35,729 bases of DNA from Macrostomum lignano. Taxonomy: Eukaryota. Location of the stretch: the NCBI GenBank assembly GCA_002269645.1, contig NIVC01004760.1:1-35729 (forward strand), read 5' to 3'. The translations under genes were made by a program, and so were the position numbers. The notes below the pieces were generated by a model. It saw nothing but the letters and a program-made list of their open reading frames with translations. It ran no database searches and was not told the DNA's origin. This document shows, piece after piece, positions 1-24,729 of this stretch (its first letter is position 1; each line of letters starts with the position of its first letter).

Positions 1-274
1 TTTAAAAAAACTATCAATGGTCTAATTGAGTGTTGATTTTTTTCTCTAGCACTTTTATTAGCTGAGTTATGGCCCATCACGTGGTGATATCTATGGCCAT
101 AAATTGCAATTCACTAGCTGCGCGGTGACAGATTGCAGTCTAAAGCTGCAAATTGCAGCATCAAATCTCAGTCTACCCTGCAATCCCTCTGCTTAATCAG
201 TCTTTAAGCAAATCAGTTCAACAATTGGCACAAGTTAACCATTCAGTATGCTAAATTTTACTAAACAACACAAG

Positions 275-412
275 ATGGCCATCAGCTTCAAAGAAAGACC
301 TCAAACCAACAGTGCGTGGCATCATTCGCTTCTGGATTGACAGCGGACGCCACAAATGTAGCTGAAATGCACGCAGAGCTTGTTGCGACATATGGAGATG
401 TTTGAAGAATAG
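275..412 (+). mobile_element. Degenerate mariner-like transposase N-terminal fragment
   Basis: Manual translation across a frameshift gives TVRGIIRFWI...ATNVAEMHAELVATYGDV, resembling the mariner N-terminal R.VIRF..G...EIH..L..YGD pattern. No TIR or catalytic domain seen. Confidence 0.45.
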
Positions 413-707
413 TTGTGTCCCCTTGACCCTCCAATCCTAGTGGCTTTAAACTTTTATCTTTCAGCAGCTGGTGAAAATCGCAATTTATCGAAAAAGGGCT
501 GAAAAAATGCTAAAAAGTGGCCATAAAAGAGGGTCACTTTTAGTGGCTGAAGGAAGGACACTTTCAGTCCCTCACCAGCCACTTACAACGGCCACCTCTC
601 GACACTTTTTCAGCCACTTTTAATTTACAGTGAATAATTTTATGACATGTTATTAAATGATTTTAAGGATAGTAGGTATATTCTAACAAGCGAGTCGCCA
701 TCAAAGG

Positions 708-1041
708 TGTGCAATGGCACAAGCCCGGCCTGTGTACCTTTATGTCTGTTCTGTTGTTGAATTAACGAAAGCAGAACAAGATAGATAATTATCTGGGCGC
801 CCAGCGGCACCAAAAGAGGGCTTGGCCAATAGGAGGGCGGCTCTAGAAGGAAAGTTCTAGAAAGACCGGGAGAGGAAACTTCTGGAACTATGCGTAAACA
901 AGTCCTGCTGTGGAAGTTTCTAGAAACCCTGTCCCCGAACTACCCCTACGCATTGCATGCCTTTGCAATACACAACAATGTCAAAGTGTGGCGATGTTTC
1001 GGAGCGGTAAAAATTGTGCTCAGCATTGGCACAAGCGCACA
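708..1041. mobile_element. Possible solo LTR (~334 bp)
   Basis: Begins TGTGC (708-712) and ends GCACA (1037-1041). Contains a CCAAT box, a GC box and three HSEs. No target-site duplication visible. Confidence 0.35.
826..926. promoter_or_regulatory. Three perfect heat-shock elements (nGAAnnTTCnnGAAn) with CCAAT and GC boxes
   Basis: gGAAagTTCtaGAAa (849-863), gGAAacTTCtgGAAc (874-888), gGAAgtTTCtaGAAa (912-926), immediately preceded by ccaat and gggcgg. Confidence 0.7.
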
Positions 1042-1994
1042 CTTTATAGACTCTGTGTTGAAATAGACAGCGTAGTCTAAGTTTTGCGCATGCAGGAACT
1101 ACTTATTCAAGTAGTCTACTACCCGCCTAATATAGCCAAGCAGGCTGAAAGACAAAAGACAAAAGGCTGAAAAAATTGCACCTTATAACAGCAGCCAATC
1201 ACGTCACCCGTGCTTCCCAGTGTGCCGCACTCCACAAAGTAAATCTCTACTTTCAAAAGCAACTAAAACGGCTGACCTGAGTCCTTTCAGGGTATCTTTG
1301 ACGGCATCTGCCTGGACAAGCGGCTCCATGAAGCCATGAAAAACTGTCATAGGATGCTACTCAAGATAGAGGCCATCGAGAAGATCAATGCGTCTAATTA
1401 AAAGGACGCTACGAGCTGCTTTTTTGTTCTCTCCCGCTTCCAATGGACGAGCGTACAAGCCATGCGTTTTAGTTAGCGTTAGGGTTAAAGCTTATAGCTT
1501 AAGAGGAGCTGCTGAGATGCCAGCAATCACTGTGGAATGCTTTTAACTTTGTCCTTAAGAAACTAGCAATATAGTGACTGTAGAAGGCTGAGAAATACAC
1601 AGTCATTTTAGCGCTAGTTCAAGGACGAACGACCCATCCTGACTAGCAAATGCATTGGAACTTTCCCACTTGTTTACGCGATAATTTACAAATATGAGCT
1701 GTCAATATTCGTTGCCGATTGGCTGCAAGGACTCCATTCTGCCTCTCAACCCACTGCCGCACCCAATACGGAACCGTTCCGTTTAATGAGCAGTCGATCC
1801 TACTCTGCATTACTTCAATAAACAAAGAAACTCCAATGAGCTGATGTGGAATTCGAACTTAATTTCTCTAATTTGTCGTTCGAAACTGAAAACCACCAAC
1901 AGACCAAGTGAATTAATAGGTATTAAATCTGATTTCAACGTAGTCAAGTGTATTTGAAATCTAGCTATCTATGAGAGCACAGCCAGCAGAGCAT

Positions 1995-2147
1995 TTACAG
2001 CTTGATGCAGCTGATGATCTGGATGGCGTTGCCGCCGCACTTGCTGGCCAGGCAGGTGGCCAGCTTGCTGATGTTGGTGCCGCTGGAGAAGAAGCAGGTG
2101 ATCAGGTTGCTCACCAGGCACGTCACGGAGTCGATGCCGTGCTGCAG
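1995..2147 (-). pseudogene. 5'-truncated paralogue (copy E) of the secreted 6-Cys protein
   Basis: Encodes LQHGIDSVTCLVSNLITCFFSSGTNISKLATCLASKCGGNAIQIISCIKL*, i.e. Cys2-6 of the family. Signal peptide and Cys1 are replaced by sequence matching the FANCL 3' end. Confidence 0.85.
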
Positions 2148-2460
2148 GACTGTCAGGATTGAGCCGCCAGCTGTCATCAATAAGTCAGCCAAGTAGTCCC
2201 GCTTTGCCATTCACTGCAAATCTTGTAGTAAACAAAAAGTGTCGAAGACAAGCCATGAATTTTATGCATTTGAACCCTGTGTCCGAGTTCGAGTTCCCAC
2301 TTGCACTTTAAATTCTATCGCGTGCGACTAAATAAAAATATAAAGTCAATTAAACAGTGAGTTTTGATAGTTTAATTAATATTTAAGCTGGCGCTTTCCA
2401 CTGTTCCAGATTGCGCTCAGCAACCGAATTGTATTTCTATGCATTGATAGAAAACTGCAT

Positions 2461-2748
2461 TTACAGCTTGATGCAGCTGAGGATCTGGATGGCGCTGCCG
2501 CCGCACTTGTTGGCCAGGCAGCCGGCCAGCTGGCTGATGTTGGTGCCGTGGGCGAAGTAGCAGGAGGCCAGGTTGGAGATCAGGCAGTTCACGGAGTCGA
2601 TGCCGTTCTGCAGCAGGCAGTTGGTGTCGATGCTGATCACGGGAACGACTTCGTGAATGATGTCGTTCACGACCTCGTTCTTCTGCTCCGGAGTGTAGGC
2701 GGCGGCGGCGAAGGCCACGAGAGCGAACAGGCAGACGACGTTGTACAT
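2461..2748 (-). CDS. Secreted 6-cysteine protein, copy A (95 aa, intronless)
   Basis: ATG at 2748 in gcagccATG context; MYNVVCLFALVAFAAAA signal peptide; C-x10-C-x7-C-x13-C-x4-C-x9-C; strong GC3 bias; close paralogues in the window. Confidence 0.85.
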   Translation of the reverse strand: MYNVVCLFALVAFAAAAYTPEQKNEVVNDIIHEVVPVISIDTNCLLQNGIDSVNCLISNLASCYFAHGTNISQLAGCLANKCGGSAIQILSCIKL

Positions 2749-2841
2749 GGCTGCTGAGCTGGGTGCTTTGGTTGCTGGCTTCTTGAGACTGGCTGCTGGG
2801 TTGAGTTGCTGATTGGGTCTCGGGCTCGGTCGCTGGGCTCT

Positions 2842-2877
2842 CATTTATGGTGCCGCTGGTGCCGCTGCAGGTGACGC
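2842..2877 (-). promoter_or_regulatory. Copy A promoter module (GCGTCACCTG E-box + CATAAAT TATA-like)
   Basis: GCGTCACCTG on the minus strand at 2877-2868, 129 nt upstream of the ATG; CATAAAT starts 28 nt after the motif start, as in copies B and C. Confidence 0.55.
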
Positions 2878-3221
2878 GGTCCCGGCCTGTCACGCCGCCC
2901 ACGCCCTGCCAGAGGCAGCTAGTTCTTATCGCTTCAAATTGACTGACTGTCCTGCAGTCGCGGTTCAGCTTAATGTCTTCTCGAATGTTCTTGCAAGATG
3001 ATTCAGCTGTTTTTGCGACCGCTTGAACTATTAGGGTTCTATTGACCGACAAATTCAACACCATTAATAAAGCCCTCCGACAGCTCGGGTAAAAAAGGTG
3101 CAACAATGAGATGCATTCCTTTGAAAAAGCAGGACTTTGGCGAAGTATATTTATTGATCATTTTATCTTCTTGTCGTAAATTTTCCATCTTGTGCGCCAA
3201 GTTTTATATGCGCCAAGCCAA

Positions 3222-3887
3222 GAGACACACTTCATAATGTGCGCTTGTGTCACTGAGACACACTTCATAATGTGCGCTTGTGTCACTGAGACACACTTCA
3301 TAATGTGCGCTTGTGTCACTGAGACACACTTCATAATGTGCGCTTGTGTCACTGAGACACACTTCATAATGTGCGCTTGTGTCACTGAGACACACTTCAT
3401 AATGTGCGCTTGTATTATTGAGACACACTTCATAATGTGCGCTTGTGTTATTGAGACACACTTCATAATGTGCGCTTGTGTTATTGAGACACACTTCATA
3501 ATGTGCGCTTGTATCACTGAGACACACTTCATAATGTGCACTAGTGTTATTGAGACACACTTCATAATGTGCGCTTGTGTTATTGAGACACACTTCATAA
3601 TGTGCGCTTGTATCACTGAGACACACTTCATAATGTGCGCTTGTGTTATTGAGACACACTTCATAATGTGCGCTTGTATCACTGAGACACACTTCATAAT
3701 GTGCGCTTGTGTTATTGAGACACACTTCATAATGTGCGCTTGTATCACTGAGACACATTTCATAATGTGCGCTTGTGTTATTGAGACACACTTCATAATG
3801 TGCGCTTGTATCACTGAGACACATTTCATAATGTGCGCTTGTGTTATTGAGACACACTTCATAATGTGCGCTTGTATTATTGAGACA
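3222..3887. repeat. Minisatellite, 33-bp unit (gagacacacttcataatgtgcgcttgtgtcact), ~20 copies
   Basis: Direct tandem units with variants gtcact / gttatt / atcact. Confidence 0.95.
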
Positions 3888-4399
3888 GCCTTCGGCTTTT
3901 GTGATTTATACGAATAGCTCCCTCGAAAGGCATGTTTAATCTTCTACATAAAACATGGACATGTTTTATGGACAATTTTCGGGGCAATGTTGAATCTAAC
4001 CAAATAGAATCCTGGAAAAGGGAAATAATGTCTTTGGAAATCAGTATAACTATACAAATGGTTGTCTTAATGGCATTTTCTTAAGGATCAAACAGAAACG
4101 TTCGGGTTGTTTTGTTTGGGTTATTTTGAGCATAAAAAGACTCGACTGTAATTAAGCATTCCCAATTTTAAAATCAGGATTCCAAAAGTTATTTCAGAAG
4201 ATATATAACTTCTACAAAAGGAAACAGCATTGCTTTCTCATTTTTACGAGCGTGTTCGAAGTTTTCTCACTTACTATTTTATTGAAGTGATTGCATTAAT
4301 GTAGATACTGCATTCTTGTCCATAGAAATCGGAATTATTTTTCTCCCATTTTGGCTAAACTGTTACAGCGCAAATGTCACCCTGTAAATCGCTATAATG

Positions 4400-5330
4400 A
4401 CAGGAAATTGAGTAAACTCAGCCCCCATCAAGCGTCCCTCAGCTGGGATAGCCATCGCCCAAATTTTTCACCCGAGGCCTTTGCATGGCCATCCAAATTG
4501 CTGCTTCTCCCACCAGCCTCCGGCCTGACGTCCGCCCCAGCCGAGTCCTTCTACTTCACTCCAATCATCATGGACGAGGTCGCTAAGGTCCTGGAGGCAA
4601 TGCGAGCGGACGCTCCGTCTGGAGTTGACGGAATCCGCCCCGAGAGTGCTGAAGTTGCCTGAGCTGCTTGGCACCGTGACCAACCGCCTGCTCAACCGCC
4701 TTGGTGGGGACGAGTCCGCCTCTGCCACCAAGCAGTGGAAGACTTCAAAGATCATCTCCATCCCCAAGAAAGGCAACTCCACCAGACTAGACAACCGGCG
4801 CGGGATTGCAATCTCCCAAAAGCGCTGAACGCCGTGCTGAGAAACCGCGCCTGCTCCCAGCGCTCAGCTCGCGCATGCCAGCTTTTCAGAGTGGTTTTTT
4901 TCTGGCAGATCAACTACTGAGCAGGTGGCGGCAATCATCATCGACTTCCGCAAAGCCTTTGATTCTGTCAGCCGGCTGGCCATAGCCTGGCTGCTCGCTC
5001 AGCATGGAGTGCCACCTCTGCTTGTGCGGGCAGTCATGGACGTGTACAGCAGTTCTATGGCCTTCCAAGCATCCGATGGACCCACTGCAGAGTTTCCAAC
5101 CTACGTGCCCCGAAGGACTCTGCAGGAAGAGGATGGCTTTTTGGTCACCCAGTGCCACGTCTCGCAGCATCCCGAGGTTTGACTCTCCTGCCTGATGCTG
5201 ACCTTACGCGCCCTGGCCGTGAAATTAGTGGAAAACCTTAGTTGGCCAAACTGGCCCATATCGCTGGTGACAGGTCTGACAGGCTGTGGCGCGGCCGTGT
5301 CACGACAGTGTCCCAGACTGTTGTTCCGCT
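4400..5330 (+). mobile_element. Degenerate non-LTR retrotransposon (LINE) reverse transcriptase fragment
   Basis: Frameshifted pieces APSGVDGIRPE, WKTSKIISIPKKGN..LDNRRGIAI and IIDFRKAFDSVSR match LINE RT motifs (PG.DG, W....I.PIPKKG...NYR.I, D..KAFDSV). RT core appears internally deleted. Confidence 0.85.
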
Positions 5331-5477
5331 GCATGAGTATGCTAATTAGGAAGCGTGTAAATTAGCTCTATACTACGCTCATACGCACAGATAAGGGAAG
5401 GAAACGCTACTTGCAGAGCCTTCTGTGACAGTTCTGACAGCTTTAACGGATTGCGCGCGGTGCTGCAGTCCGAGACC

Positions 5478-5512
5478 GCGTCACCTGCAGCGCCACCAGC
5501 GGCACCATAAAT
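5478..5512 (+). promoter_or_regulatory. Copy B promoter module (GCGTCACCTG + CATAAAT)
   Basis: GCGTCACCTG 5478-5487; CATAAAT 5506-5512; ATG 129 nt after the motif start. Confidence 0.55.
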
Positions 5513-5606
5513 GAGAGCCCAGCGACCGAGCCCGAGACCCAATCAGCAACTCAACCCAGCAGCCAGTCTCAAGAAGCCAGCAACCAAAGCACCCAGCTCA
5601 GCAGCC

Positions 5607-5894
5607 ATGTACAAGCTCGTCTGTCTGTTCGCTCTCGTGGCCTTCGCCGCCGCCGCCTACACTCCGGAGCAGAAGAACGAGGTCGTGAACGACATCATTC
5701 ACGAGGTCGTTCCCGTGATCAGCATCGACACCAACTGCTTGAAGCAGAACGGCATCAGCTCCGTGAACTGCCTGATCTCCAACCTGGCGACCTGCTACTT
5801 CGCCCACGGCACCAACATCAGCCAGCTGGCCGGCTGCCTGGCCAACAAGTGCGGCGGCAGCGCCATCCAGATTCTCAGCTGCATCAAGCTGTAA
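5607..5894 (+). CDS. Secreted 6-cysteine protein, copy B (95 aa, intronless)
   Basis: MYKLVCLFALVAFAAAA signal; same Cys spacing; AATAAA at 5918-5923. Confidence 0.85.
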   Translation: MYKLVCLFALVAFAAAAYTPEQKNEVVNDIIHEVVPVISIDTNCLKQNGISSVNCLISNLATCYFAHGTNISQLAGCLANKCGGSAIQILSCIKL

Positions 5895-6522
5895 ATGTTT
5901 CGGTATTGAGGCTATAAAATAAACTTAAAGTACAATATTAACAACGATCTTACTTTACTAATAACTGAATTTCTTTTCTGAGTGCATTTTTTGTTTAGAC
6001 TTGTTGGTATAACAAAGTTAAGAAAACTGGAAACTTTATATCCCCAGATAAGTTAAAGAATTGTCTGATCAAAGGGTGTCTTTAGTTAAAACAAATTAAT
6101 TTATTGGTGTTCTCGGATTTATCAACCAGCTGCTACAGCAATAACACCCTCGATCTGCTATTACTGCTCCTGGATAACTAGTGCTCAAGGACTACTAAAG
6201 TAACGTAATTGTTCCAGTGGTCCTAGCCTACGCGCTTTATCACTGACGATTGCAGAAAACAAGGCTTTGACAATTGCTTTGTCAGATACTGCTGGCGAAA
6301 ATGCTTGCAGTTGATGCTGCTGATAAAATTCTCTCCTAGGGCAATTCCATGTCACCGCTAACATTTGGTCATCTTCACCCAATTGTCAATATTCACCCAA
6401 GATGTCCTGTGTTCTTAAGTCGTCCTTGAATACAAGCGATTGTGCGATCGAGACTGATTGAAGCGAATAAATCTGAAGGGCAACTTGCAGCATGTAGCGG
6501 AGAACTAGCTGTAAGTTTGCGG

Positions 6523-6966
6523 CACAGATACTATAGAATGACTGGATGGGCCACTCAGCACATTTGCGTGTAGGCTACTTTCAGTTCAGTAGTAAGTTAA
6601 ACAGAAGCATTTGAATTCCAAAGCTCGTTTATTGGGTCTTACCCACCAGCTTAAACCCTCCAACCGCGCCTTTCCACACGACACCAACCCCCCCCGCCCC
6701 GCCCCAATTTTTATTGCCTTTCTCGGAATTTCAGCCTAAAGCTGCCATGTACACTTCAGTGGACTGGCTAATGTACATTACTGCTGAACCAATTAGCAAG
6801 TTGCTTACGCCTGCAGGCTTGGGATTCTAAACTTATCAGTCATTTCAGCTGCCTTTATTTTTATAAATAGCTTATATATTCTTCTTTGCTACTGAACTGA
6901 AAGTAGAAAGCTGTTTTACTAAGTATTTATGGCTGAGTGGCCCATCCAGTTAGTTTAGCATCTGTG
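6523..6966. mobile_element. Non-autonomous hAT-type MITE, copy 1
   Basis: Imperfect long TIRs (CACAGATACT...GGGCCACTCAG / CTGAGTGGCCC...ATCTGTG) and subterminal CTACTTTCAGTTCAGTAG inverted repeats; flanks gtttgcgg / gtctgcgg (7 of 8 match, TSD). Confidence 0.85.
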
Positions 6967-7887
6967 GTCTGCGGGCAGAAAACTACAAGCAGAAGACGAA
7001 CCACCATGAGAAAGGTGACAATAACCGTCGCGATAGAGAGAAACTAAAAAACTTAAAAAATCAGGGAAACAAGTACTTGTATAGCTTGTTGCTTCAGAAA
7101 TAATTCCCGCAAGAACATAACAGGCTCATCCACGCTGCGCTATCAAATTAGGCGATTTATGTGTGTTGTTATTCCTTGTAGCTATGTACTTTTTCGTTGC
7201 TTTGCACATTATCCGATTTGTTCAATTTGACAGCGCGTAACTTGATGGCGGCGAGAAGTATCTAGATCTAGTTTTAAAATTATTTTGCAGAAAATTCCAA
7301 ATGTTCAATCTGATTGATTTATCGAGCCAGAATAGTAATAATAATAAAACTGATTACACCTCCCTGATTACACGATTGTTATCGAGCTTGACAATTAAAG
7401 GCTTGTGGCATAGACCAGAGATAGAGACCGCGTCAAGGCATTTCACGGCATAATGGCTACCTAACAAAGAAATCAGTGCATGTCCAATCACAGCTAGTCT
7501 GAAGCGCTCTAAAGTCCACGGCTCGTATACCTGCCCGCGTGCATCACATCGTTGATAAAATACCATGCTTCCCGAAGAAAGCTAGATCACAAACCCGAAA
7601 TATCATAGCTCCGAAAACCAAAATAGCGTTAGGCGTTGCTAGCATTCGGAGTTATGATGTTTCCGGTTTATGATATGGAAAGCACTTTTTAGAGTTGTAA
7701 TTTTTCGGGTTTGCGATGCCCTCCCAGACATGGGGTGGACGAACTTTGGAACATCTTTGGAACGATTCACTAGAAATTTTAAACTAAGTCCTTTATGCTA
7801 CCATATGTATGTCTCCAAAGTATAGCCAAACTACTTGACAAAGTTGCGAAATTATTTTTAGATTCTGCATTCACAAGCGCCGACAAC

Positions 7888-8947
7888 ATGCACTGAGAAA
7901 TAATTATTTACTATGGCTACAAGAGGTTTAAGACAGCAAAAGAGCTTTGAGGAACTTTAGGCAGTTTTTGGCAATAAAGTACCTTCCACTACCACAGTTT
8001 TTGAGTGGTTTGCCGAAGTTCGACATAGCCGACGGAGTCTGGATGATGAAGACTGCAGCGGCTGGCCCACCTCCGCAGCAAGGGATGAGAATATGAGTGC
8101 TGCTATTCAGGCCATGACTAAGAATGATGCCAGGGTAACTGTGGCCCAGATGGAGGCAGAAGTGGGCATCTCATCGGCAGCCATCCGCACGATTCTGCAC
8201 TCAAGGCTCAACCTGAGCAAGATTTCTGCACGCTGGGTGCCTCATCACCTGACAGAGGAGCAAAAGGAGGCTCGGGTGGCTTGGTGCCATGCCATGCTCG
8301 ACAGATTCGATGGTGGCCGCTCAAACTGGATCTGGGAAATCGTCAGTGGTGAAGAATCCTGGATCTACAGTTTTGACCCAGAGACCACACGCAGCAGTCG
8401 ACACAGTGAACACCAGTTAAAGGTGCCCCACGTGGGGCAGCGTGGCAAAGCAGATGTTGGCCGTTTTTGTGACGAAAGCAGCGCACAGTCACTGGCAACT
8501 GGCGTACCGACTACTGCCTGTCAGAAGTGCTGAGTGCTCTCTCCAATTGCCGTTTAAGGACTCGAGCTCGGGGTGTGCTTCTTCATCACAACGCCCCCGC
8601 CCACAAGTCCAGGCAAGTGGTCGAATTTCTGGCTGGAGAACACATTCAAGAGCTCCGCTATCCACCCTACAGCACAGACCTGGCCCCGCGCGAGTTCTTT
8701 GTGTTTCCGCAAACCGAGCAGAAGATGCAAGGCAGTCGCTATTCATCGCCGGAAGCTGCAGTCGAGGCCTTCATCAAGCATGTCAAGGGGGTGCCAAGTT
8801 CAGTGGTCCAGCTGCTTCAATAAGTGGTATGAGAGGATGCAATGGTGCATAGATTCTTATGGAGAGTACCTTAAAAAAATATGACTGTCAGTTGCTCTCC
8901 AACTATTTCAGACTTCGCACATCCAGAAACTTATTGCACACCCCTCC
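7888..8947 (+). mobile_element. Degenerate mariner (DD34D-type) transposon
   Basis: SARWVPHHLT (WVPHEL motif), IVSGEESWIY, LLHHNAPAH, YSTDLAPREFFVF with catalytic aspartates mutated or lost, frameshifts, and a right-end TIR-like ...ttattgcacacccctcc followed by TA (8948-8949). Left TIR not found. Confidence 0.92.
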
Positions 8948-9123
8948 TAAAAACTTGGTTTCGGAAAACCGCCGACAGTGCAAAATATTTGTGAATTAAG
9001 CAGCATGCGCTGATAATCTGACAGCAGCGCAGGCAACAAGACTGTCAAATACCAAAACGCATGATAAGAGATGAGATATTGGAAACCACTAAACAGCAGA
9101 CAAAATAAACCGGTTAAAAACTT

Positions 9124-9212
9124 TGTGACAGTTCTGACAGCTTTAACGGACTGCGCGCGGTGCGGCTGTCCGAGACCGCGTCACCTGTAGCGCCACCAGC
9201 GGCACCATAAAT
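9124..9212 (+). promoter_or_regulatory. Copy C promoter module, shared with copy B
   Basis: 9124 onward aligns with 5424 onward (tgtgacagttctgacagctttaacgga...); GCGTCACCTG 9178-9187; CATAAAT 9206-9212. Confidence 0.55.
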
Positions 9213-9914
9213 GAGAGCCCAGCGACCGAGCCCGAGACCCAATCAGCAACTCAACCCAGCAGCCAGTCTCAAGAAGCCAGCAACCAAAGCACCCAGCTCA
9301 GCAGCCATGTACAACGTCGTCTGCCTGTTCGCTCTCGTGGCCTTCGCCGCCGCCGCCTACACTCCGGAGCAGAAGAACGAGGTCGTGAACGACATCATTC
9401 ACGAGGTCGTTCCCGTGCTCAGCATCGACACCAACTGCTGCTGCAGAACGGCATCGCTCCGTGAACTGCCTGATCTCCAACCTGGCCTCCTGCTACTTCG
9501 CCCACGGCACCAACATCAGCCAGCTGGCCGGCTGCCTGGCCAACAAGTGCGGCGGCAGCGCCATCCAGATTCTCAGCTGCATCAAGCTGTAAATGCATTT
9601 TCTATCAATGCATAGAAATACAATTTGGTTGCTGAGCGCAATCTGGAACAGTTGAAAGCGCCAGCTAAAATATTAATTAAACTATCAAAACTCACTGTTT
9701 AATTGACTTTATATTTTTATTTTGTCGCACGCGATAGAATTTAAAGTGCAAGTGGGAACTCGAACTCGGACACAGGGTTCAAATGCATAAAATTCATGGC
9801 TTGTCTTCGACACTTTTTGTTTACTACAAGATTTGCAGTGAATGGCAAAGCGGGACTACTTGGCTGACTTATTGATGACAGCTGGCGGCTCAATCCTGAC
9901 AGTCCTGCAGCACG
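9170..9914. repeat. Inverted segmental duplication, arm 2 (partner 2138-2885)
   Basis: Near-identity to the reverse complement of 2138-2885; identity stops at 9914, inside FANCL. Confidence 0.9.
9307..9592 (+). pseudogene. Secreted 6-cysteine protein, copy C (two 1-bp deletions; pseudogene or assembly error)
   Basis: Almost identical to copy A but tgcctg>tgctg (~9438) and gactcc>gctcc (~9457); 286 nt against 288. Confidence 0.8.
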
Positions 9915-12130
9915 CACAGCCTCGCCCTGCAGTAGGGGCAGCAGCCGTGCAGTCGGTTGAAGCCCTGCCGAGTGTCCGGCAGGCCGCGCAGCCACTCCAC
10001 TGCGCAGCTGCGGTGGTAGCGACGCCGGCAGCGCTCGCAAGTGACGCAGTCGGGACCATCGGCGGAGCAGTCAGCGTAGCAGATGCCGCAGTCGACATCC
10101 TCGGTAGCGGCCTCGACGCCAGCATCGCCCGCCACCGGCTGCTCGGTCTCGACGGCTGAAGGCTCGGCAAGCAAGGCGGAGCCGCCCAGCAGAGCTCTCA
10201 GGTTGGACACAAAGTCCGCGACGTCCGCGCCTGCTTCCAGGCGGCGGAGTTGGCGGTCACGGCCACTTCGATGGCCTCGGCAGCCGGACCTGCGGCACTG
10301 ACGGATGGCAGGGCAGCCGGGCTGGCGTCGGGGTCCAGCCTGATCAGCAGGCTGCTGGCGCGGCTGCGGGGAGTTGGAGCTGCCTCCGCATCAATATGAT
10401 GTAGTTTTTGTTTTAGTGCGCGATGGCGGCTATTTAGGGTATTCAGTATCTGAGCACACCTGGGGCCGACCTCATGAAGATGGCAGTTGCAATCTTCAAC
10501 AAAAGGATTTGCCATAGACAAAACAGCCTCTGCTAAATCCGATTGCATGTTGGAGATTGGAAGCGGACCTGGACTTCTTGAGCTTTAGGTACATAAAATA
10601 CTTCCGATTTTTTCGCCAGAGTCTTAGAGCAAAAAACTGCAAAAATTACCTTCAGAGTTAACAGGAGCTTAATTTGTAATCTCCTATGTAATTAGTGATA
10701 ATTTGATATAAGCAGGTTCGGAGAATTTTGTGTTTGAAATTTGAAGTTTTTTTGGAATCATACTTTCAACTGTAAAAAATTTCCAAAATTTGATGAAATT
10801 ATTCTAATAAAAACATTTAGAGGGTTCAAATTTTAACTCCGATAAAAATAGTGTCTATTCTAATTTAAATATGCTGACTCAGGGTTCGCCACCCGCCCCT
10901 TACCTCCCGCTTTTTGATTTGCTGTCGTTCTCTCATTGTTGTGCCGACTAGCCGTACATTCTTTACTTGTTTACCTATACTAATTTTACTAATCTGCTTG
11001 TCTCATTCAAGTTAACTACAGCTGCTGATGTCAATTAGTTTTGATAGGATTGTCATTTTTTCTTCATGGAGGTGTTTGATGGCTTGCCGAATTTTTTATT
11101 TAAGCCCCCCTCAGTCTCCGAATTTATCTACCTAATCTACAATAGACTCCCATGCTTCTGTTGAAGTTTATGTACATAAAATCAATCCCCATGAAGATTC
11201 TCCCCACCCTAAAACCCCCATTCCCTATGCCCCGGTGTTGGTTTGAAGCTACGAAAAAACGAAGCTCAATTTGAAATCAGCACCATCAAACCCTAAGGAA
11301 CAAAATTATGATCCTATCAAAACTGCAACAATTTTATACCTACCTAAAGCTCAAGAAGTCCGCGGAGCTGTGTAGTGCAAAAATGCAAATATTTGATTAA
11401 AAACTCAGCTAGAGTCGCCAGTTGCTCAGCAAAAGCCACTCACTCGGCCAGCAGCACCCGTCGGTGAAGCGAGCGCTACGCTGGGCCGGCCGCGGCTCAA
11501 GCACGACCAGCCGGCTGTCCAGCTGCTCCAGCAGCTCCCAGTGCGGCAGCAGCGACCGCGACGCCCCGGCGAACCGGTCGAACAGGCGCCGCAGGCTGCC
11601 GTCGCCGCCACCGCCGCCGGGGATCGGAACTGGCAGCTCCGAGTCGACGAGGCAGAAATTGGGACAGTCGCCAACATCGGCGGCAACGCGAAGCCGGATG
11701 CCCTCCGGGCTGATCAGAGTGGCCGAGGCAAAGTCGGGCGACACGGACTCGATGCAGCCGAGCCCGACGGTCAGGAGTTCGCGCCCGGCGCGGGCCAACC
11801 AGCGCCGATGGCGCAGACGATCGGTCGAAACAGACACTGTCACGTCCTCGGCCGGCGCGGCAGCCTCTTCACCCGGAGTCATCGGGCGTTGAAGCAGGTC
11901 GCGCGCCGTCGCCAGCATTTCGTCGGGGTTTTCTGGTGGCGCGGCCGCCTCGGCCAGCACTGACCGGCCGGACTCGGCGAAGGCCAGCAGGCCACAGCGG
12001 CGCGGCTCCACGGCTAGCAGAAGACGGCCGATATCGGCGCCGCCGGGATTCGAACTCGGATCGTGATTCGGCTGCTGCTGCTCCCGCGGCGCAGGCAGCG
12101 GCAGAAGCAGCCAATGAGCAGCTGTGGCGC
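9890..12130 (-). CDS. FANCL: E3 ubiquitin ligase FANCL (exons ~12130-11444 and 10363-9890; start codon not resolved)
   Basis: SLRRLFDRF..SLLPHWELLEQLDSRLVVLEP (URD) and DCGICY...C..C...YH..C..EWLRGLPDTRQGFNRLHGCCPYC (FANCL RING) are recognisable. GA|GTGAGT donor (11443) and ccgcag|C acceptor (10364) join in phase. Two 1-bp frameshifts (~11470, ~10237). Confidence 0.92.
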
Positions 12131-12489
12131 TGATTGAGGACTGAAGAGCAGTGAATGGTTTGCACTGTGCATTTGTACAGCTCGTATACTCGGACAGGTA
12201 GCGAATCCAGGTGCGCACCCCGTGGCATTCCAGTATAGAGACAGTGCCGCTTATTTTCAGGGACACTGGCGCTGGCAGGGGTGCCTCCATGGATTTTTAT
12301 GGCGTGGGGGGGGGCGAAACTTATTTTGTCGCCCGAAGGAAAACTCTTGGTTTCACTTGATTTCACTATTGATTTCTGCTAGCCTGTGTTCCGAAGCTAG
12401 CAGAACACTAGCCTCTTTTGCTAGTGGTCCTGGGATAAAAAGCATTGACATATCCCCCTGTCTCCCCTGGTGACGAGGTCCCTGAGCGC

Positions 12490-13000
12490 TAATCTACAGA
12501 CATCGGCGCTTGTCTAGAGATACCTATGCTAAGCTAGAGACATTGGCGCCTGTCTAGAAAAACTGGCGCTAGTCTACAGACACTGGTGCTAGGCTAGAGA
12601 CACTGGTGCTAGGCTAGAGACACTGGTGCTAGGCTAGAGACACTGGTGCTAGGCTAGAGACACTGGTGCTAGGCTAGAGACACTGGTGCTAGGCTAGAGA
12701 CACTGGTGCTAGGCTAGAGACACTGGTGCTAGGCTAGAGACACTGGTGCTAGGCTAGAGACACTGGTGCTAGGCTAGAGACACTGGTGCTAGGCTAGAGA
12801 CACTGGTGCTAGGCTAGAGACAACATTGGGGCTAGGCTCTAGAGACATTGGCACTTGTCTAGACATACTGGCACGTATCTAGAGATATTGGCGTTAGTCG
12901 AGAGACACTGGCGCTAGTCTAAAAACATTGGGGCTAATCTAGAGACATTGGCGCTTGTCTAGAGATACTGGCGTTAGTCGAGAGATATTGGCGTAAATAG
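12490..13000. repeat. Minisatellite, 20-bp unit (ctagagacactggtgctagg)
   Basis: Perfect core ~12580-12820 with degenerate flanking units. Confidence 0.95.
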
Positions 13001-13470
13001 CATGTAAAAACTCTATAAACACTAGAAGCCCCTTAAAGACGCTGGAATAACGGGATTATGTCTCCCTGACCAATAAAACCTTGTGTGTACAAAGTAGACA
13101 AAGATAACCCCGATCCTCAAGACAAAAAAGCTCACAACACACTACAATAGATAATTAGACTTTGGTAGTCACAGAAATGCACCCTTACATGCTTGTGGAT
13201 CCCCTTGTGATCAAATTGCGGAATGAAGCTCTTAAAGTGTCGAAAAATCTGCTTAGAAAATATGCGACTACTAAATTCGACTAGCAGTCGGCAAGCGAAC
13301 GCTGACAGTCGAGCTGCATTATCTTGACAGCTGACTTGAAAAAAACACGACAAAGGGCGTGAGTAGAAAAGCTGGCAGTGTCTCACCGTCAATTGGCAGC
13401 CAAGTGGTCTGACCCGACAGGCCGTGGGCGGACCAACAATTTGCGGTGGAGGGGGGGGTCAATCAAAACT

Positions 13471-13480
13471 GCGTCACCTG
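13471..13480 (+). promoter_or_regulatory. GCGTCACCTG motif upstream of copy D
   Basis: Exact 10-mer 122 nt upstream of the copy D ATG, in flanking DNA otherwise largely dissimilar to the A/B/C promoters. Confidence 0.5.
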
Positions 13481-13592
13481 CGACTTATTCAGACATTTAA
13501 GAGTATTTCAATATGCAGTCGGGGGCAAAGGCTGACTGAGCGACGGACCCCAAGCCTGTGGCATCAGCACCAAAGCACCCAGCTCAGCAGCC

Positions 13593-13883
13593 ATGTGCAA
13601 GCTCGTCTGTCTGTTCGCTCTCGTGGCCTTCGCCGCCGCCGCCGCCTACACTCCGGAGCAGAAGAACGAGGTCGTGAACGACATCATTCACGAGGTCGTT
13701 CCCGTGCTCCGATTGGACACCATCTGCTTGCAGCAGAACGGCATCACATCCGTGACCTGCATCGTGACCAGCCTGCTGGTCTGCTTCGTCTCCAATGGCA
13801 ACAACATCAACGAACTGGCTGCCTGCCTGGCCAGCAAGTGCGGCAGCAGCGCCAGCCAGATCATCAGCTGCATCAAGCTGTAG
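13593..13883 (+). CDS. Secreted 6-cysteine protein, copy D (96 aa, most divergent)
   Basis: MCKLVCLFALVAFAAAAA signal, identical acidic segment, same Cys spacing; ATTAAA at 13921-13926. Confidence 0.85.
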   Translation: MCKLVCLFALVAFAAAAAYTPEQKNEVVNDIIHEVVPVLRLDTICLQQNGITSVTCIVTSLLVCFVSNGNNINELAACLASKCGSSASQIISCIKL

Positions 13884-14839
13884 AGGCCCAGCTTCAACGA
13901 TGCAGTCTGATTGAAAGCAAATTAAAAATACACGGCCCACCTGCGTGACTGGTACAGCTCACTGCAGCTTGCCGCAGCGCGAAATGCATTTACTTGCTTT
14001 TGTAGACAAAGCCTTGCCTTTCTGATAGCTCTATTGATATTCATAAAGCTTTTCGTTTAGAAAATTAGGATTCTTTGTTAATTTTATATCCTACATGTAA
14101 TTGTACATGTCCTGTGCCTAAAAATCATTATAAATGGCACGACCCGGCTCATTGGTTTTATGAGTCTTACGAGTATCATCCTTAGCTCAATGACTGAGTA
14201 ACAAAACGTGTAACAGAATGATAAAATAGTACGATTGTATCATTACAATCATATTGTTGTACCTATAAGGCAAGGCATATCAAAATATGAACACTGGGTC
14301 TCCCTTCTATCAAAAGCAATAACAATATTTATATTTAAAGGGGGAACCTGTTTATCTTCGGAATGTATATTCCTATGTATATAAACCTGTCTCCTAAAAT
14401 TTTTCAACTTGTAGTTCTCAACTTGGTGACACACCGACAAGGCCTAAGTAGTATTTGTGCACTCCTGATACAAAATCCCTATAGTCCTACTAGTCTATCC
14501 GTAAAGTTAAATTTGAAAATTAAAACATAGTCAATAGCCGGCGATAGAAAATTAACTGGCAAAAATACACTCAGTCGCTACATCCGTGAAGCAAAACTAT
14601 TCAATATATTTATACATATGGCTATACGAGTCGACAGGAGTGGGTATTTTGCCAATTGTCAATGCGTAAAAATGGGGACAAGCTGCAAATCACGGTCAAA
14701 ATTATGGCAACATCAATTTTCGCGCCTATAGTCTTCACCACACTGTAAATTAAAAGTAGACTAAGACATGGGTGTCAAAGGTGTCTAAGATGTCCGAATT
14801 TTTTGTAGAATCGCTTGTCCAAAAAAGTCCACTATCGAC

Positions 14840-15305
14840 CACAGATGCTAGAATAACTAGATAGGCCACTCGGCACATTTGCGTGCCAGCTACTTTCAAT
14901 TCAGTAGTAAGTTAAACTGAAGCATTTTAATGTTTAATTAATTCTTAAAGACAAAGCTTAATTATTGGCTCTTACCCCCCAAGCTAATTAAACCCTCAAA
15001 CTCCTCATAGAACCTCTACCCCGGCCCGCGACCTAATTTTATTACCTTCTTTGGTTGTTCCAGCCTAAATCTGCCTTGTACTCGTAAATTTCAGTGGCTA
15101 ATGTACATTTTGGCTGCACTAATTAGCAAGCTGTTTACGTCTGCAAGCTTGGGCTTCTATACTTATCAAAGTCATCTCAGCTGCCTTATTCTTATAAAAT
15201 AGCGTGTGTATTCTTCTTTGCTACTGAACTGAAAGTAGACAGCTGTTTTGCTAAGTACGAGTATAATGTGTCTGAGTGGCCAATCTAGTTATTTTAGTAT
15301 CTGTA
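14840..15305. mobile_element. hAT-type MITE, copy 2
   Basis: CACAGATGCTAGAATAACTAGATAGGCCACTC ... GAGTGGCCAATCTAGTTATTTTAGTATCTGTA termini; same internal sequence as 6523-6966; TSD degenerate. Confidence 0.8.
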
Positions 15306-15403
15306 CTTTCCCCCCATCGCTAGAGTTCCAGCTGGCGTGAATTCCAGCATCCCGCTAAAGAAACGTTCAACGCATAATTCCAATCTCAATACTTTATTAA
15401 GTG

Positions 15404-15775
15404 CTAATTGAATTTGTGTCGAGCGGCCGACGAAATAACCGGCGGGCCCAAAACCGGCTCGAGCCAGCCGGTGATGCGGGACCAAGCCGGGTATCTCACG
15501 CTGTCGCTGCTCGATTGAGTCCAGTGCACGGCGTAGGTAAATCTGGCCAACTTAGTCCCAGTTACCATGGCAACCGGATACGGCATCAGGCTGATCAGGC
15601 AGCTAAACAGCCGATCTCTAGCCAGCATTCGTCGAGAGCCGGCATACAGACAGACGGATAAACCGAAAGCAGCCGCGTTGCCTAGCAACAGGGACACAAC
15701 GCGGAAGTAGGGATCCTTGTAGTAGACCAGTGGGTAGGGCAGTGCGGGCCCGTGGCTGTCTGAGCTGTGCGACAT
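15404..15775 (-). CDS. Possible small membrane protein or exon, unknown
   Basis: GC-rich 123-aa ORF with hydrophobic stretches (FRVVSLLLGNAAAFGLSVCLY; LFSCLISLMPYPVAMV). No family recognised. Confidence 0.3.
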   Translation of the reverse strand: MSHSSDSHGPALPYPLVYYKDPYFRVVSLLLGNAAAFGLSVCLYAGSRRMLARDRLFSCLISLMPYPVAMVTGTKLARFTYAVHWTQSSSDSVRYPAWSRITGWLEPVLGPPVISSAARHKFN

Positions 15776-15856
15776 GAAATTTCCAATGTGCTGAGTTTTT
15801 GATTAGCGTATCAGGCATGGAGAGCCATTCAATTAGGATCTGCTCTTGGGGTGCCA

Positions 15857-16615
15857 AGACACCCAGCAGCCCCGCGCCTTCATTCCCATCAGACACCCAG
15901 CAGCTCCGCGCCTTCATTCCCATCAGACACCCAGCAGCCCCGCGCCTTCATTCCCATCAGACACCCAGCAGCTCCGCGCCTTCATTCCCATCAGACACCC
16001 AGCAGCCCCGCGCCTTCATTCCCATCAGACACCCAGCAGCCCCGCCTTCATTCCCATCAGACACCCAGCAGCTCCGCGCCTTCATTCCCATCAGACACCC
16101 AGCAGCCCCGCGCCTTCATTCCCATCAGACACCCAGCAGCCCCGCACCTTCATTCCCATCAGACACCCAGCAGCTCCGCGCCTTCATTCCCATCAGACAC
16201 CCAGCAGCTCCGCGCCTTCATTCCCATCAGACACCCAGCAGCCCCGCGCCTTCATTCCCATCAGACACCCAGCAGCCCCGCGCCTTCATTCCCATCAGAC
16301 ACCCAGCAGCTCCGCGCCTTCATTCCCATCAGACACCAAGCAGCCCAGCGCCTTCATTCCCCAGCAGCTCCACGCCTTCATTCCCATCAGACACCCAGCA
16401 GCTCCGCGCCTTCATTCCCATCAGACACCCAGCAGCCCCGCGCCTTCATTCCCATCAGACACCCAGCAGCTCCGCGCCTTCATTCCCATCAGACACCCAG
16501 CAGCCCAGCGCCTTCATTCCCATCAGACACTCCAGCAGCACCCAGCGCCTTCATTCCCATCAGACACTCAGCAGCTCCGCGCCTTCATTCCTAGCAGACA
16601 CTTTTCATTCCTAGC
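15857..16615. repeat. Minisatellite, 34-bp unit (cacccagcagccccgcgccttcattcccatcaga)
   Basis: About 22 tandem units with ctcc/cccc variants. Confidence 0.95.
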
Positions 16616-17292
16616 AGAATTGAAATGAAACAAAAAGACAAAAGACAGCAAGTGAAAGAGATTAAGGTTTGCATTTAGAACAAAAAGTACTTTTATCTCT
16701 AATGAACAAGAATTTTTATGTAGTTAAGACGAAAGTTAAAAAAACATTAACCTCAGTCACTGGCAGAGAGCCTTGGTTGCATTGATAAAAAATAAATAGA
16801 TAAAAAGGACATCAGGAAGGGACAGATACTTTGAACCCAACTTTGTATTCGGAAATATTACTAAAATATTATACAGTGTAAAGTTCACAGGCATGAATTA
16901 GTATAACACAACACTCGATTTTTTCAGAAATGGGCTGGAGATGTCGCTAGTGCATCTAGTATGCTATCTAGAGGTAATCTGATTCTTACCCTAGCGAATT
17001 TGTCTATGGTAAATTTCTGAGCCCCAAGCTCATTTCTAAGAAAACCCGACTTATAGCAAATTATCCATCCTACTTCAGCTGTCCATGGTAAAGATTTATT
17101 TACAATACCCTGAGTGAGCGCGTGTGGCCCTACGTACGTATCTGTCTCCATGCTCAGGAGCCAGCGGAATGAGCAGAACTGACACGCCTCTCCTCGCACT
17201 TGGACAACAGACGTAGAATTGCACTTTTGAAACAAAAACAGAGACAGATGCCTCCGTTTGAACTATATTATATAATAAGGATCTAAAAAGTG

Positions 17293-18027
17293 CTAATGAG
17301 CGGCAGACTGCTTCTGCCGGGCCAGCGTCACCAGATGCCTCAGCATCAGCGCCTCCGACGGCCGCATCGACGGCAGCGAAGATTCCACGCTAGCCAGTCG
17401 ACGCTCGACATCAACTGAAGCGTCCGCGCCGAGTCTGACTGACGTCGAGTTGGCAACGGCAGAGTTGATGGAGGCGGCGGCCTCCTGACCGTCAGCTGGC
17501 AGCCTCCGATAGTCGCCGCCGTCCAGCTGTCCGAGCAGGCGCTCCAGACCGGCCACTTTGACTCGCAGGTCGGCCAGCTCGTTGGCCAGGGCGGCGCCGC
17601 TCTGCCCGGCCAAGGCCCGCCACTGCTGGCCGGTGTCCAGCAGGCGCAGCCGCTCGGACTCGACCCCGGCCAGCAGGCGGCGCAGGTCGGCGTTCTCTCG
17701 GCCGACTGACTCGGCGGACTGGCGAATCGAGTGCAACTCGTCTGAGCGCCGGCTCAGGCGGGCGCTGAGCTGATCAACTGTGCTCGAATGCCGACGCAGC
17801 AGGCGGACGCGGTCGGCCAGGAGGTCGCGGAGCATCGCTAGGAGGTCGGCCCGGCTGCACTTGTCCAAATCCGACTCGTCTAGCAGAGCCGCCGGTGGCG
17901 GAGGCGGCGGCTGAGGCGCGTCAATGTCAATGTCGAAGTCGACTTCGTTCAAGCCGACGTCCCGGACAGGAGGTTCATCGGCGTCGACATGGGCGCGGTC
18001 GGGTTGGTCCAAGCCGGGCGACAGCAT
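17293..18027 (-). CDS. Coiled-coil protein of unknown family (244 aa from ATG 18027; possibly the last exon of a longer gene)
   Basis: GC3-rich ORF, acidic/proline N-part followed by heptad-like LRDLLADRVRLL...LADLRVKVAGLERLL; tttttcag acceptor 4 nt before the ATG. Confidence 0.7.
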   Translation of the reverse strand: MLSPGLDQPDRAHVDADEPPVRDVGLNEVDFDIDIDAPQPPPPPPAALLDESDLDKCSRADLLAMLRDLLADRVRLLRRHSSTVDQLSARLSRRSDELHSIRQSAESVGRENADLRRLLAGVESERLRLLDTGQQWRALAGQSGAALANELADLRVKVAGLERLLGQLDGGDYRRLPADGQEAAASINSAVANSTSVRLGADASVDVERRLASVESSLPSMRPSEALMLRHLVTLARQKQSAAH

Positions 18028-18068
18028 TTCTCTGAAAAATTTACTCTCAAAAATGTAATGCTGATTGA

Positions 18069-18461
18069 CACCAAGGGGCGCCAGCACCAAGGGGAGCCAG
18101 CACCAAGGGGCGCCCCCGCGCCAGCACCAAGGGGCGCCAGCACCAAGGGGCGCCAGCACCAAGGGGCGCCAGCACCAAGGGGCGCCAGCACCAAGGGCGC
18201 CAGCACCAAGGGGCGCCAGCACCAAGGGGCGCACCAAGCGCCAGCACAAGGGGCGCCAGCACCAAGGGGCGCCAGCACCAAGGGGCGCCAGCACCAAGGG
18301 GCGCCAGCACCAAGGGGCGCCAGCACCAAGGGGCGCCAGCACCAAGGGGCGCCAGCACCAAGGGGCGCCAGCACCAAGGGGCGCCAGCACCAAGGGGCGC
18401 CAGCACCAAGGGGCGCCAGCACCAAGGGGCGCCAGCACCAAGGGGCGCCAGCACCAAGGGG
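18069..18461. repeat. Minisatellite, 16-bp unit (ggggcgccagcaccaa)
   Basis: About 24 near-perfect tandem units. Confidence 0.95.
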
Positions 18462-18499
18462 TCTAAGCCTGATATAAGAAGATGCCAAATTAGTGAGCA

Positions 18500-18590
18500 A
18501 GGGGGCATTGTGATTTAGCTGGCTCCATTTTTATAAAATGTATTCTTCTTTGCTACTGAACTGGAAGTAGAGAGCAGCTGTGTTACTAAA
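18500..18590. mobile_element. Fragment of the hAT-type MITE (right subterminal part)
   Basis: tattcttctttgctactgaactggaagtag matches the MITE subterminal block. Confidence 0.65.
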
Positions 18591-18699
18591 AATAATAATA
18601 GATTACACCTGCTGCAATTGGGCCAGATGTGCAATGGCAACACAGCTACAGCTCTTGTATGGCGCATCTTAAGGCTATATACATGTATAGCTATTCAGT

Positions 18700-24225: not shown

Positions 24226-24729
24226 AGAGAGTAATCAGCAAAAGCGATAAAAACCTTCAAAAATGACTTATCATTCTCGAACAAGTGCGAAAGATTTTTA
24301 TAACGATGGCAAACGAGCAAAAAAGAAACACTAGCCAAAAAAGTAAAAAAACCTATTTAACAACAAAGACAAAAACGACAAAACTAATACGGTGAATAAA
24401 AAATAACTCAGGAACACTGACTGATTTGTGTGGCTCGACTTGCTTAACTCTGCAAAACAAACAGAGATTCAATTAGTAAAGCAAATTGAGCGCAAGAAAA
24501 GCATAAGAAGCATAAAAAATGTACCAAAGTCACGAGTGAATTATGTAGTCCACAGAGAAACACGTATATAAGTAGTTCCACAACCTTTTATCGATAACAA
24601 TGGGTTCGCGAACACAAGTCTGATATCGCAACAATGAATAATATTGATTTATGACTTCTTATTTTTCCTATTAAAAATTGTTCAAAAAGGCAACTCAATT
24701 CGTTAAAGTAAAGTATAGGAGACACAGAG

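Follow-up and report, generated by a model that had tools for sequence, protein, structure and literature searches.

The locus described here raises the question whether a cluster of closely similar short genes, each specifying a small secreted protein with six cysteines, belongs to any known protein family, and what such a protein could do for the animal. The cluster is located on contig NIVC01004760.1 of the Macrostomum lignano Mlig_3_7 assembly, which is 35.7 kb long and is referred to here as the window; protein matches carry BOX15_Mlig locus tags. The six-cysteine family appears to be undescribed and, in current databases, is known only from Macrostomum. An interpretation made from the letters of the DNA, called here the sequence-only reading, had proposed five intronless paralogues of an unrecognised secreted protein. 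Open reading frame (ORF) listing, alignment and tblastn all yielded exactly this arrangement, four genes and one fragment, in agreement with the earlier positions and strands, and tblastn with five family members as queries returned copies A to E and no further copy in the window. The coding sequences (CDS) are as follows:

2461-2748, minus strand: copy A, intact CDS of 95 aa; a transcript-based gene model lies at 2461-2805
5607-5894, plus strand: copy B, intact CDS of 95 aa; AATAAA at 5918-5923
9307-9592, plus strand: copy C, CDS broken in the window contig by two 1-nt homopolymer deletions
13593-13883, plus strand: copy D, intact CDS of 96 aa; the most divergent paralogue
1995-2147, minus strand: copy E, a 3' fragment with the last 47 codons and the stop codon, without start codon or signal peptide

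Self-comparison of the window revealed nucleotide identities far above chance. Copies A and C form an inverted pair with 98.3% identity over 748 bp, including about 320 bp of 3' flank, B and C are 96.9% identical over 478 bp, and D shows about 86% identity to the other copies. On the protein level, 72% of the residues of D are identical to B. The first third of D is nearly the same as in B, and its cysteine domain is 21% diverged. Each intact CDS is an uninterrupted ORF and the annotated transcripts of close paralogues measure 288 nt, which is consistent with an intronless CDS.

The precursor of 95 to 96 aa consists of a signal peptide of about 17 aa, an acidic amphipathic helix, YTPEQKNEVVNDIIHEVVPV, and a cysteine domain of 58 aa ending in CIKL. 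Judged by eye, the signal region, M-Y/C-K-L-V-C-L-F-A-L-V-A-F-A-A-A-A in the copies, has the n-h-c layout with a boundary at AAA/Y. All copies share the cysteine spacing 10-7-13-4-9 without exception, as do three of the four divergent subfamilies, while the fourth shows 10-7-11-4-9; the six cysteines are kept across subfamilies down to about 40% identity. The domain is hydrophobic (grand average of hydropathy, GRAVY, 0.56-0.99) with a net charge of 0 to +3, while the acidic helix carries -3 to -4; the mature protein ranges from -3 to -1 in subfamilies with the acidic segment and reaches +3 in the subfamily without it. An AlphaFold2 model of the mature protein had a mean predicted local distance difference test score (pLDDT) of 78.6, with 85-90 across the cysteine domain and about 53 in the N-terminal helix. 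It is all helical apart from 2-residue bridges, the helices comprising residues 3-17, 25-30, 36-50, 54-65, and 69-75. Three disulfides would brace this helical domain. Signal peptide, acidic segment YTPEQKNEVVNDIIHEVVPV, near-neutral hydrophobic domain, cysteine spacing, and the helical nature of a protein with six invariant cysteines are thus as the sequence-only reading had described them.

To which proteins is this layout related? Pfam scans of four, and then of 12, members at E<=10 gave only noise. Searches of PDB sequences with a single sequence and with a profile produced chance matches only (topoisomerase 2, E=0.19; SecB, E=0.76). Family members were all that a word-indexed search of 5.8 billion proteins retrieved, both for a single query and for a profile of 12 sequences at E<=10, and an exhaustive hidden Markov model (HMM) search of 1.84 billion representative proteins gave five matches, all from M. 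lignano and none outside Macrostomum. When full-length and mature AlphaFold models were compared to the PDB by Foldseek, no match fell below E=1; the best for the mature model had E=1.5, and the top matches were BAF and homeodomains with template modelling (TM) scores of 0.3-0.4. Full-text literature searches for family gene IDs and for 'Macrostomum' together with 'saposin' yielded nothing relevant, and the family IDs were not found in the supplements of an ageing paper, a 2026 ploidy paper, and a 2018 Sci Rep paper. The family therefore remained unrecognised in Pfam, in PDB sequences, and by Foldseek on the AlphaFold model, and among the 1.84 billion representatives its lineage-specific nature held. 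Lineage-specific, tandemly amplified, cysteine-rich secreted families as such are a familiar kind in animal genomes.

One name in the databases pointed in another direction. UniProt automatically names A0A1I8HA56 and A0A267D9N1, members of two different subfamilies, 'Saposin B-type domain-containing protein', presumably on account of the PROSITE saposin B-type profile. This automatic match is borderline, since near-identical 127-aa entries are left 'Uncharacterized'. As controls, six sequences of saposin-like proteins (SAPLIPs) were validated by Pfam, and all six matched SapB_1 and SapB_2. None of the 12 family members matched SapB_1, SapB_2, or Saposin at E<=10, whereas six of six controls did. 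Alignment of the family profile to the SAPLIP profile by hhalign gave a probability of 0.09%, and a SAPLIP HMM in unfiltered searches (hmmsearch --max) scored the family at -1 to +1 bit, equal to shuffled and reversed controls. On these three sequence tests a canonical saposin was rejected, and the earlier statement that the protein is not saposin-like, made because CxxC is missing, holds in spite of the automatic name.

The comparison can be extended to the layout of the proteins. SAPLIPs include saposins, NK-lysin, amoebapores, and proteins of flatworm gut. Family and SAPLIPs share secretion, a mature length of about 78 aa, helical and hydrophobic character, six cysteines, and one C-x10-C. 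The canonical pattern C-x2/3-C ... C-x10/11-C ... C-x5-C, seen in all six controls, is not that of the family: its spacing is 10-7-13-4-9 instead of about 2-27-10-25-5, it has no N-terminal CxxC, and in one subfamily the cysteine domain occurs without the putative helix 1. A highly derived SAPLIP could nevertheless be considered, in which the acidic helix would be saposin helix 1 without its two cysteines, the disulfides would be rewired, and the protein would lyse ingested cells in the manner of amoebapores or of the gut SAPLIPs of parasitic flatworms. The UniProt name in two subfamilies, the saposin-like mature length, the correspondence of C1-x10-C2 to saposin C3-x10-C4 and of C4-x4-C5 to C5-x5-C6, and the helical, hydrophobic protein would fit. 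Against it stand the negative Pfam, hhalign, and unfiltered HMM results, the missing CxxC, the subfamily without putative helix 1, the near-identical entries without a name, and the top 30 Foldseek matches in the PDB, among which no saposin is found for the mature model, its N-terminal helix being modelled at a pLDDT of only about 53. We regard this origin as rather improbable; functionally, it is close to the membrane-active effector favoured below.

Other small disulfide-rich proteins were compared in the same way. The cysteine spacing of crustacean hyperglycemic hormone (CHH) is x16-x2-x12-x3-x8. CHH, ITP, and latrodectin (HAND) resemble the family in being all-helical with six cysteines and in the C-terminal half, x12-x3-x8 compared to x13-x4-x9, but the first half is x16-x2 instead of x10-x7, no Pfam match at E<=10 and no PDB fold match by Foldseek were obtained, and bulk body-wide expression is unlike that of a neurohormone. 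Hydrophobins and surfactant protein B (SP-B) are, like the family, small, secreted, disulfide-rich, and unusually hydrophobic. However, hydrophobins have eight cysteines, CC pairs, and a beta core, whereas family members have six cysteines, none of them paired as CC, in line with what had been noted from the sequence; SP-B, unlike the family, is a canonical SAPLIP, and neither sequence nor fold similarity to hydrophobins or SP-B was found. CS-alpha/beta defensins and macins are cationic, with a beta-sheet stapled to a helix, while the family is predicted to be all-helical, with a mostly anionic mature protein and a domain of charge 0 to +3, so that the exclusion of these cationic peptides also stands. 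Euplotes pheromones and Aplysia attractin, helical proteins of 38-58 aa, differ in cysteine spacing and were not among the Foldseek PDB matches.

Two further comparisons concern gene-family behaviour and not homology. Antimicrobial peptide and toxin gene families usually combine a conserved signal or pro-region with a variable cysteine-framework domain and tandem amplification. With conotoxin and defensin clusters the family shares a conserved signal and anionic segment, a fast-evolving domain with fixed cysteines, tandem and inverted duplication, and presumed gene conversion; it differs in having no visible proteolytic processing site and a domain that is nearly neutral and larger than most. 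The PROG family of planarians comprises lineage-specific small secreted proteins of the flatworm epidermal lineage. These are likewise flatworm-restricted, small, secreted, multi-copy, and highly expressed in the soma, without sequence relationship to the family.

The cluster had been thought to belong to a locally expanding family, and the family indeed extends beyond the window and throughout the genome. A sixth intact copy is located on NIVC01003085.1, just outside the window, about 2.8 kb beyond its start, adjoining an amine-oxidase gene. The annotation has close paralogues on at least eight further contigs, adding at least ten genes: Mlig018888g1, 018987g1, 020553g1, 004736g1/g2, 021740g3, 025334g1, 013012g2, 000320g4, 003595g1, and 003912g2. 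Four divergent subfamilies with 35-47% identity keep all six cysteines, namely Mlig029556g2/g3, A0A1I8HA56, Mlig019425g1 together with Mlig026862g1-5, and a segment in A0A1I8GVX6. As the Mlig019425/Mlig026862 subfamily has no putative helix 1, the 58-aa cysteine domain is able to stand and fold alone. In addition, an uninterrupted orthologue with 68% identity was detected on genomic-looking Logan contigs from SRR31628394 and SRR31628425, presumably from another Macrostomum species.

Two of the database entries deserve comment. In A0A1I8GVX6 (979 aa), a family member at about 100-188 is fused to regions resembling, by eye, a ligand-gated channel and a C-type lectin and to repeats encoded by minisatellites; almost certainly, this older gene model is a chimera and not a real multidomain protein. 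Eight residues (VNDIIHEV) encoded by the uninterrupted genomic ORF (10001-10384 of its contig) are missing from the GenBank protein Mlig018888g1, probably due to a mis-modelled 24-nt 'intron' in the annotation.

Comparisons of the genes among each other revealed two parts with different histories. Relative to the orthologue from the other species, the ratio of nonsynonymous to synonymous substitution rates (omega) of the acidic segment is 0.11-0.15, and this segment is under purifying selection. In the cysteine domain, omega is 0.6-1.2 between species and 1.3-1.4 between paralogue types (A or B versus D), the latter being not significantly above 1 with small counts of about 30 nonsynonymous and 7 synonymous changes; judged from these values, the domain diverges fast around fixed cysteines. 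The region encoding signal and acidic segment differs between B and D at 1 of 111 nt, that of the domain at 37 of 177 nt (p=6e-8), whereas divergence between species amounts to 15% in the 5' part and 25% in the domain. The 5' third is thus homogenised among the paralogues, from which we infer gene conversion. The family as a whole grew by tandem and inverted duplication.

Information on expression was taken from Brand et al. 2020 (PMC7336406), in which three published RNA-seq datasets were re-analysed on the Mlig_37v3 transcriptome. In Table S8 of that study, Mlig000320.g3 and.g4 are 288-nt transcripts of the class 'Non-Specific' along the body axis (PMC7336406), and Mlig000320.g4 corresponds to PAA46020.1, which falls into the same 90% cluster as copy B. 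Counts for head-only fragments, fragments including testis, fragments including ovary, and whole worms are 3790/7938/5935/3873 for g3 and 3806/7806/5528/3575 for g4, while most genes in the table have counts of 10-300 (PMC7336406). Both lack neoblast, germline, and social annotation, and the response to group size is not significant, with adjusted p values of 0.76 (g3) and 0.33 (g4) for octets versus isolated worms and 0.85 (g3) and 0.51 (g4) for octets versus pairs (PMC7336406). The mRNA of close paralogues is therefore very abundant, body-wide, and somatic, and absence of transcripts, which would have spoken against the family, was not observed. A single-nucleus atlas of M. lignano also exists (PMC11398382).

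This pattern bears directly on the candidate functions. The non-specific class, the abundance in the head-only fragment, and the missing social regulation disfavour a pheromone, which had been among the earlier suggestions, as well as reproductive or adhesive gland products; prostate or seminal-fluid, adhesive-gland, gonad, stem-cell, and pheromone roles are all argued against. Euplotes pheromones and Aplysia attractin are small helical three-disulfide proteins and would provide precedents for a signalling molecule, be it a water-borne or contact pheromone, a seminal-fluid protein, or a peptide hormone, and fast domain divergence is typical of reproductive proteins. The paralogues, however, are specific neither to the tail with the prostate nor to the testis or ovary region, group size has no effect (adjusted p 0.33-0.85), head fragments show bulk expression, and the cysteine spacing is unlike that of attractin or the Er pheromones, neither of which was retrieved by Foldseek. 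A signalling role is accordingly very improbable.

The same abundance would suit a structural or material secretion, that is, a component of epidermal mucus or rhabdites or a hydrophobin- or surfactant-like coat without target-directed activity. Besides the body-wide mRNA level, which includes the head fragment, a high copy number consistent with dosage demand, a hydrophobic and nearly uncharged domain, a domain omega of about 1, as could result from weak constraint outside the cysteines, and the precedent of the planarian PROG-like epidermal proteins can be cited in its favour. The protein, on the other hand, is small, compactly folded, and disulfide-rich; the repeats and the low-complexity or cross-linking motifs that characterise structural secretions are missing, and the relative expression of the family rises from the head to the testis-level fragment, where an evenly spread epidermal product should be diluted by gonad RNA. 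We consider a purely structural role unlikely. A carrier of lipids or small hydrophobic ligands in extracellular fluid or gut, comparable to non-specific lipid transfer proteins, odorant-binding proteins, or secretoglobins, would also be in accordance with very high expression of a small helical, disulfide-braced, hydrophobic domain. Yet no similarity to known carrier families was detected by Pfam or Foldseek, 58 aa are few for a ligand cavity, and carriers do not usually evolve as fast as this domain, which makes this function distinctly improbable.

The reading that we favour is a different one. A secretory tissue spread through the soma, either epidermis or rhabdite glands, or gut, would release the protein in large amounts. 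At the interface with lipids or membranes, the protein would then serve constitutively in defence or as a digestive or prey-lytic effector. The high gene copy number would serve output, divergence of the domain would broaden or track targets, and the acidic helix may act as a mask or chaperone for the hydrophobic domain up to its release. We propose only tentatively, and with clearly less than even confidence, that a three-disulfide helical domain secreted in bulk by the soma is such a membrane- or lipid-active defence or lytic effector, masked by its acidic helix. In its wider form the proposal states that the 58-aa domain is a new, macrostomid-only, disulfide-braced helical fold with mRNA at the percent level, representing a new class of membrane- or interface-active proteins (defence, prey lysis, or surface conditioning) with an acidic N-terminal mask; in this form it is doubtful.

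Several observations weigh against a masked membrane-active effector. In contrast to most antimicrobial peptides, the domain bears hardly any charge (0 to +3), there is no cleavage site between acidic segment and domain, and the Mlig019425/Mlig026862 subfamily has no acidic segment at all. Relaxed constraint on a structural or filler protein would explain an omega of about 1 equally well. Reads multi-map among near-identical paralogues, so that the expression values refer to the family and not to single copies in the window, and the positional RNA-seq data, which peak in the testis-level fragment (about 1.75x head), cannot separate gut from epidermis or glands.

The genes themselves are compact units of about 450 bp, consisting of a TATA-like promoter, a CDS of 288-291 nt, and a short 3' untranslated region. 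The GC content at third codon positions (GC3) of the CDS is 0.90-0.95 in a window with about 45% GC. A TATA-like box is present about 95-100 nt 5' of each ATG, CATAAAT in A, B, and C, CATTTAAG in D, and GCATAAAT in the orthologue, and is preceded by an element, TGCGTCACCTGC, which all four genes (A to D) have kept and which reads TGCGTCAGCTGC in the orthologue. The following putative promoter elements were located by comparison of the upstream sequences:

2843-2849, minus strand: TATA-like CATAAAT of copy A, about 95 nt upstream of the ATG; presumed promoter function
5477-5512, plus strand: putative core promoter of copy B, with CGCGTCACCTGCAG at 5477-5490 and CATAAAT at 5506-5512
9206-9212, plus strand: TATA-like CATAAAT of copy C, from the upstream-sequence comparison
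13470-13501, plus strand: putative promoter of copy D, with TGCGTCACCTGC at 13470-13481 and CATTTAAG at 13494-13501

The GenBank annotation of the assembly is transcript-based (RNA-seq; StringTie/TACO/TransDecoder), and its gene models cover A, B, and D. The 5'-partial CDS annotated on B starts at 5541, about 30 nt past the TATA-like box, where transcription is expected to start. Longer ORFs of 127 aa (MRAQRPSP...) were rejected as the real N-terminus: their ATG falls within the TATA-like box, neither D nor the orthologue conserves the extension, and a canonical signal peptide stands at the start of the 95-aa form. We therefore take the 95-aa form as the probable product.

Two additional motifs were noticed in the flanking regions. 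In A, D, and the orthologue, the TATA-like box is preceded at a distance of about 60-80 nt by an element GTGGGCGG, which resembles an EGR site or a Sp/KLF-like GC box and is missing from B and C; together with the conserved TGCGTCACCTGC (a cAMP response element half-site plus E-box) it may define a compact strong promoter. A conserved AAATACA, which may be a variant polyadenylation signal, follows the stop codon at a distance of 30-45 nt in A, C, D, E, and the orthologue; B has the canonical AATAAA instead.

13424-13431: GTGGGCGG element of copy D
about 2880-2900, minus strand: GTGGGCGG element of copy A
about 390-400 of the orthologue contig: GTGGGCGG element of the orthologue
2420-2440, minus strand: AAATACA of copy A
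9615-9635: AAATACA of copy C
13915-13930: AAATACA of copy D
1950-1965, minus strand: AAATACA of copy E
about 880-890 of the orthologue contig: AAATACA of the orthologue

Copies C and E required a closer look, as they had been described as frameshifted and truncated, respectively. In C, the reading frame is broken by two 1-nt deletions, CC to C near 9438 and GG to G near 9456, and these are the sole differences from intact copies of the same gene on NIVC01003085.1 and NIVC01000671.1. The locus is in fact present on three contigs with about 99.4% identity, at 1-14147 of the window, 4458-18622 of NIVC01003085.1, and 1-13675 of NIVC01000671.1. Between the window and NIVC01003085.1 (99.4% over 14.1 kb), 46 gap openings and 26 mismatches were counted, mostly 1-nt indels. 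Such indel-dominated differences probably represent the pattern of long-read consensus errors, which are able to create false frameshifts. The M. lignano assembly is documented as highly redundant, and the occurrence on three contigs reflects this redundancy, either as haplotigs or as a duplicated large chromosome. Since the homopolymer deletions are absent from the two other contigs, the contig differences are dominated by indels, and the assembly is redundant, copy C is probably an intact, real gene and its frameshift an assembly error. A true pseudogene was rejected, because the breaks resemble homopolymer consensus errors.

For copy E, homology to the other copies is restricted to 1991-2147. 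What looks like its N-terminus (MAKRDYLADLL...) derives from the 3' flank of the inverted A block, and this flank recurs downstream of C at 9842-9914. The block 2138-2885 on the minus strand equals 9170-9914 on the plus strand with 98.3% identity and overlaps the end of the homology of E:

2138-2147: junction at which copy E joins the inverted A block; microhomology of about 10 nt (CTGCAGCAC)

Because the stretch in question is flank sequence, E was not accepted as a truncated protein with a new N-terminus. It is the 3' relic of an inverted duplication, derived from a paralogue resembling D or the orthologue, with its N-terminal part read from the 3' flank of A.

The surroundings of the cluster are those of an ordinary animal genome, and the conserved neighbours encoding a GIPC-type PDZ protein and a protein kinase confirm the metazoan context. 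Outside the family, the window contains the following features:

9890-10548, minus strand: FANCL_C-type RING gene (Pfam E=7e-16), placed at 9890-10210 in a narrower delimitation, directly downstream of copy C; its 3' region belongs to the block duplicated in inverted orientation beside copy E
27307-28935, minus strand: GIPC-type PDZ exons (GIPC1_GH1, E=3.5e-17, and PDZ)
32639-33501, minus strand: protein-kinase exons (Pkinase, E=1e-30)
8093-8852, plus strand: degenerate, frameshifted Tc1/mariner transposase (HTH_Tnp_Tc3_2, DDE_3), between B and C
21231-21557, plus strand: RVT_1 reverse-transcriptase fragment
4351-5200, plus strand: ORFs resembling reverse transcriptase by eye; the scanned ORF at 4925-5182 had no Pfam match
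6522-6967, 14837-15304, 24727-25173, 26629-27072, and 33514-33828: five copies of a dispersed repeat of about 450 bp (76-89% identity), one of them between B and C
3222-3887, 12486-12993, 15857-16601, and 18069-18461: four minisatellite arrays with units of 33, 20, 34, and 16 bp, respectively, and 20-25 copies each

The dispersed repeat is probably a short interspersed element (SINE) or an element resembling miniature inverted-repeat transposable elements (MITEs). The minisatellites produce long spurious ORFs in several frames, and the 16-bp array lies inside an ORF at 17293-18441 on the minus strand that also encodes a coiled-coil-like protein.

Macrostomum lignano serves as a model for regeneration, stem cells, bioadhesion, and sexual selection, and transgenesis and RNA interference are available. 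That a family making up a large share of the somatic mRNA of this species has neither a name nor a domain nor a homologue outside the genus constitutes a clear gap in annotation. The compact and presumably strongly active promoter of about 100-190 bp could serve for transgene expression. If the protein were only a bulk component of mucus or rhabdites, it would be an ordinary lineage-specific secretory protein. Should the domain instead prove to be a new helical scaffold with membrane activity, the antimicrobial and lytic repertoire would gain a small fold accessible to recombinant production, and the gene family would provide a worked example of concerted evolution of the prepro-region beside diversification of the mature domain.

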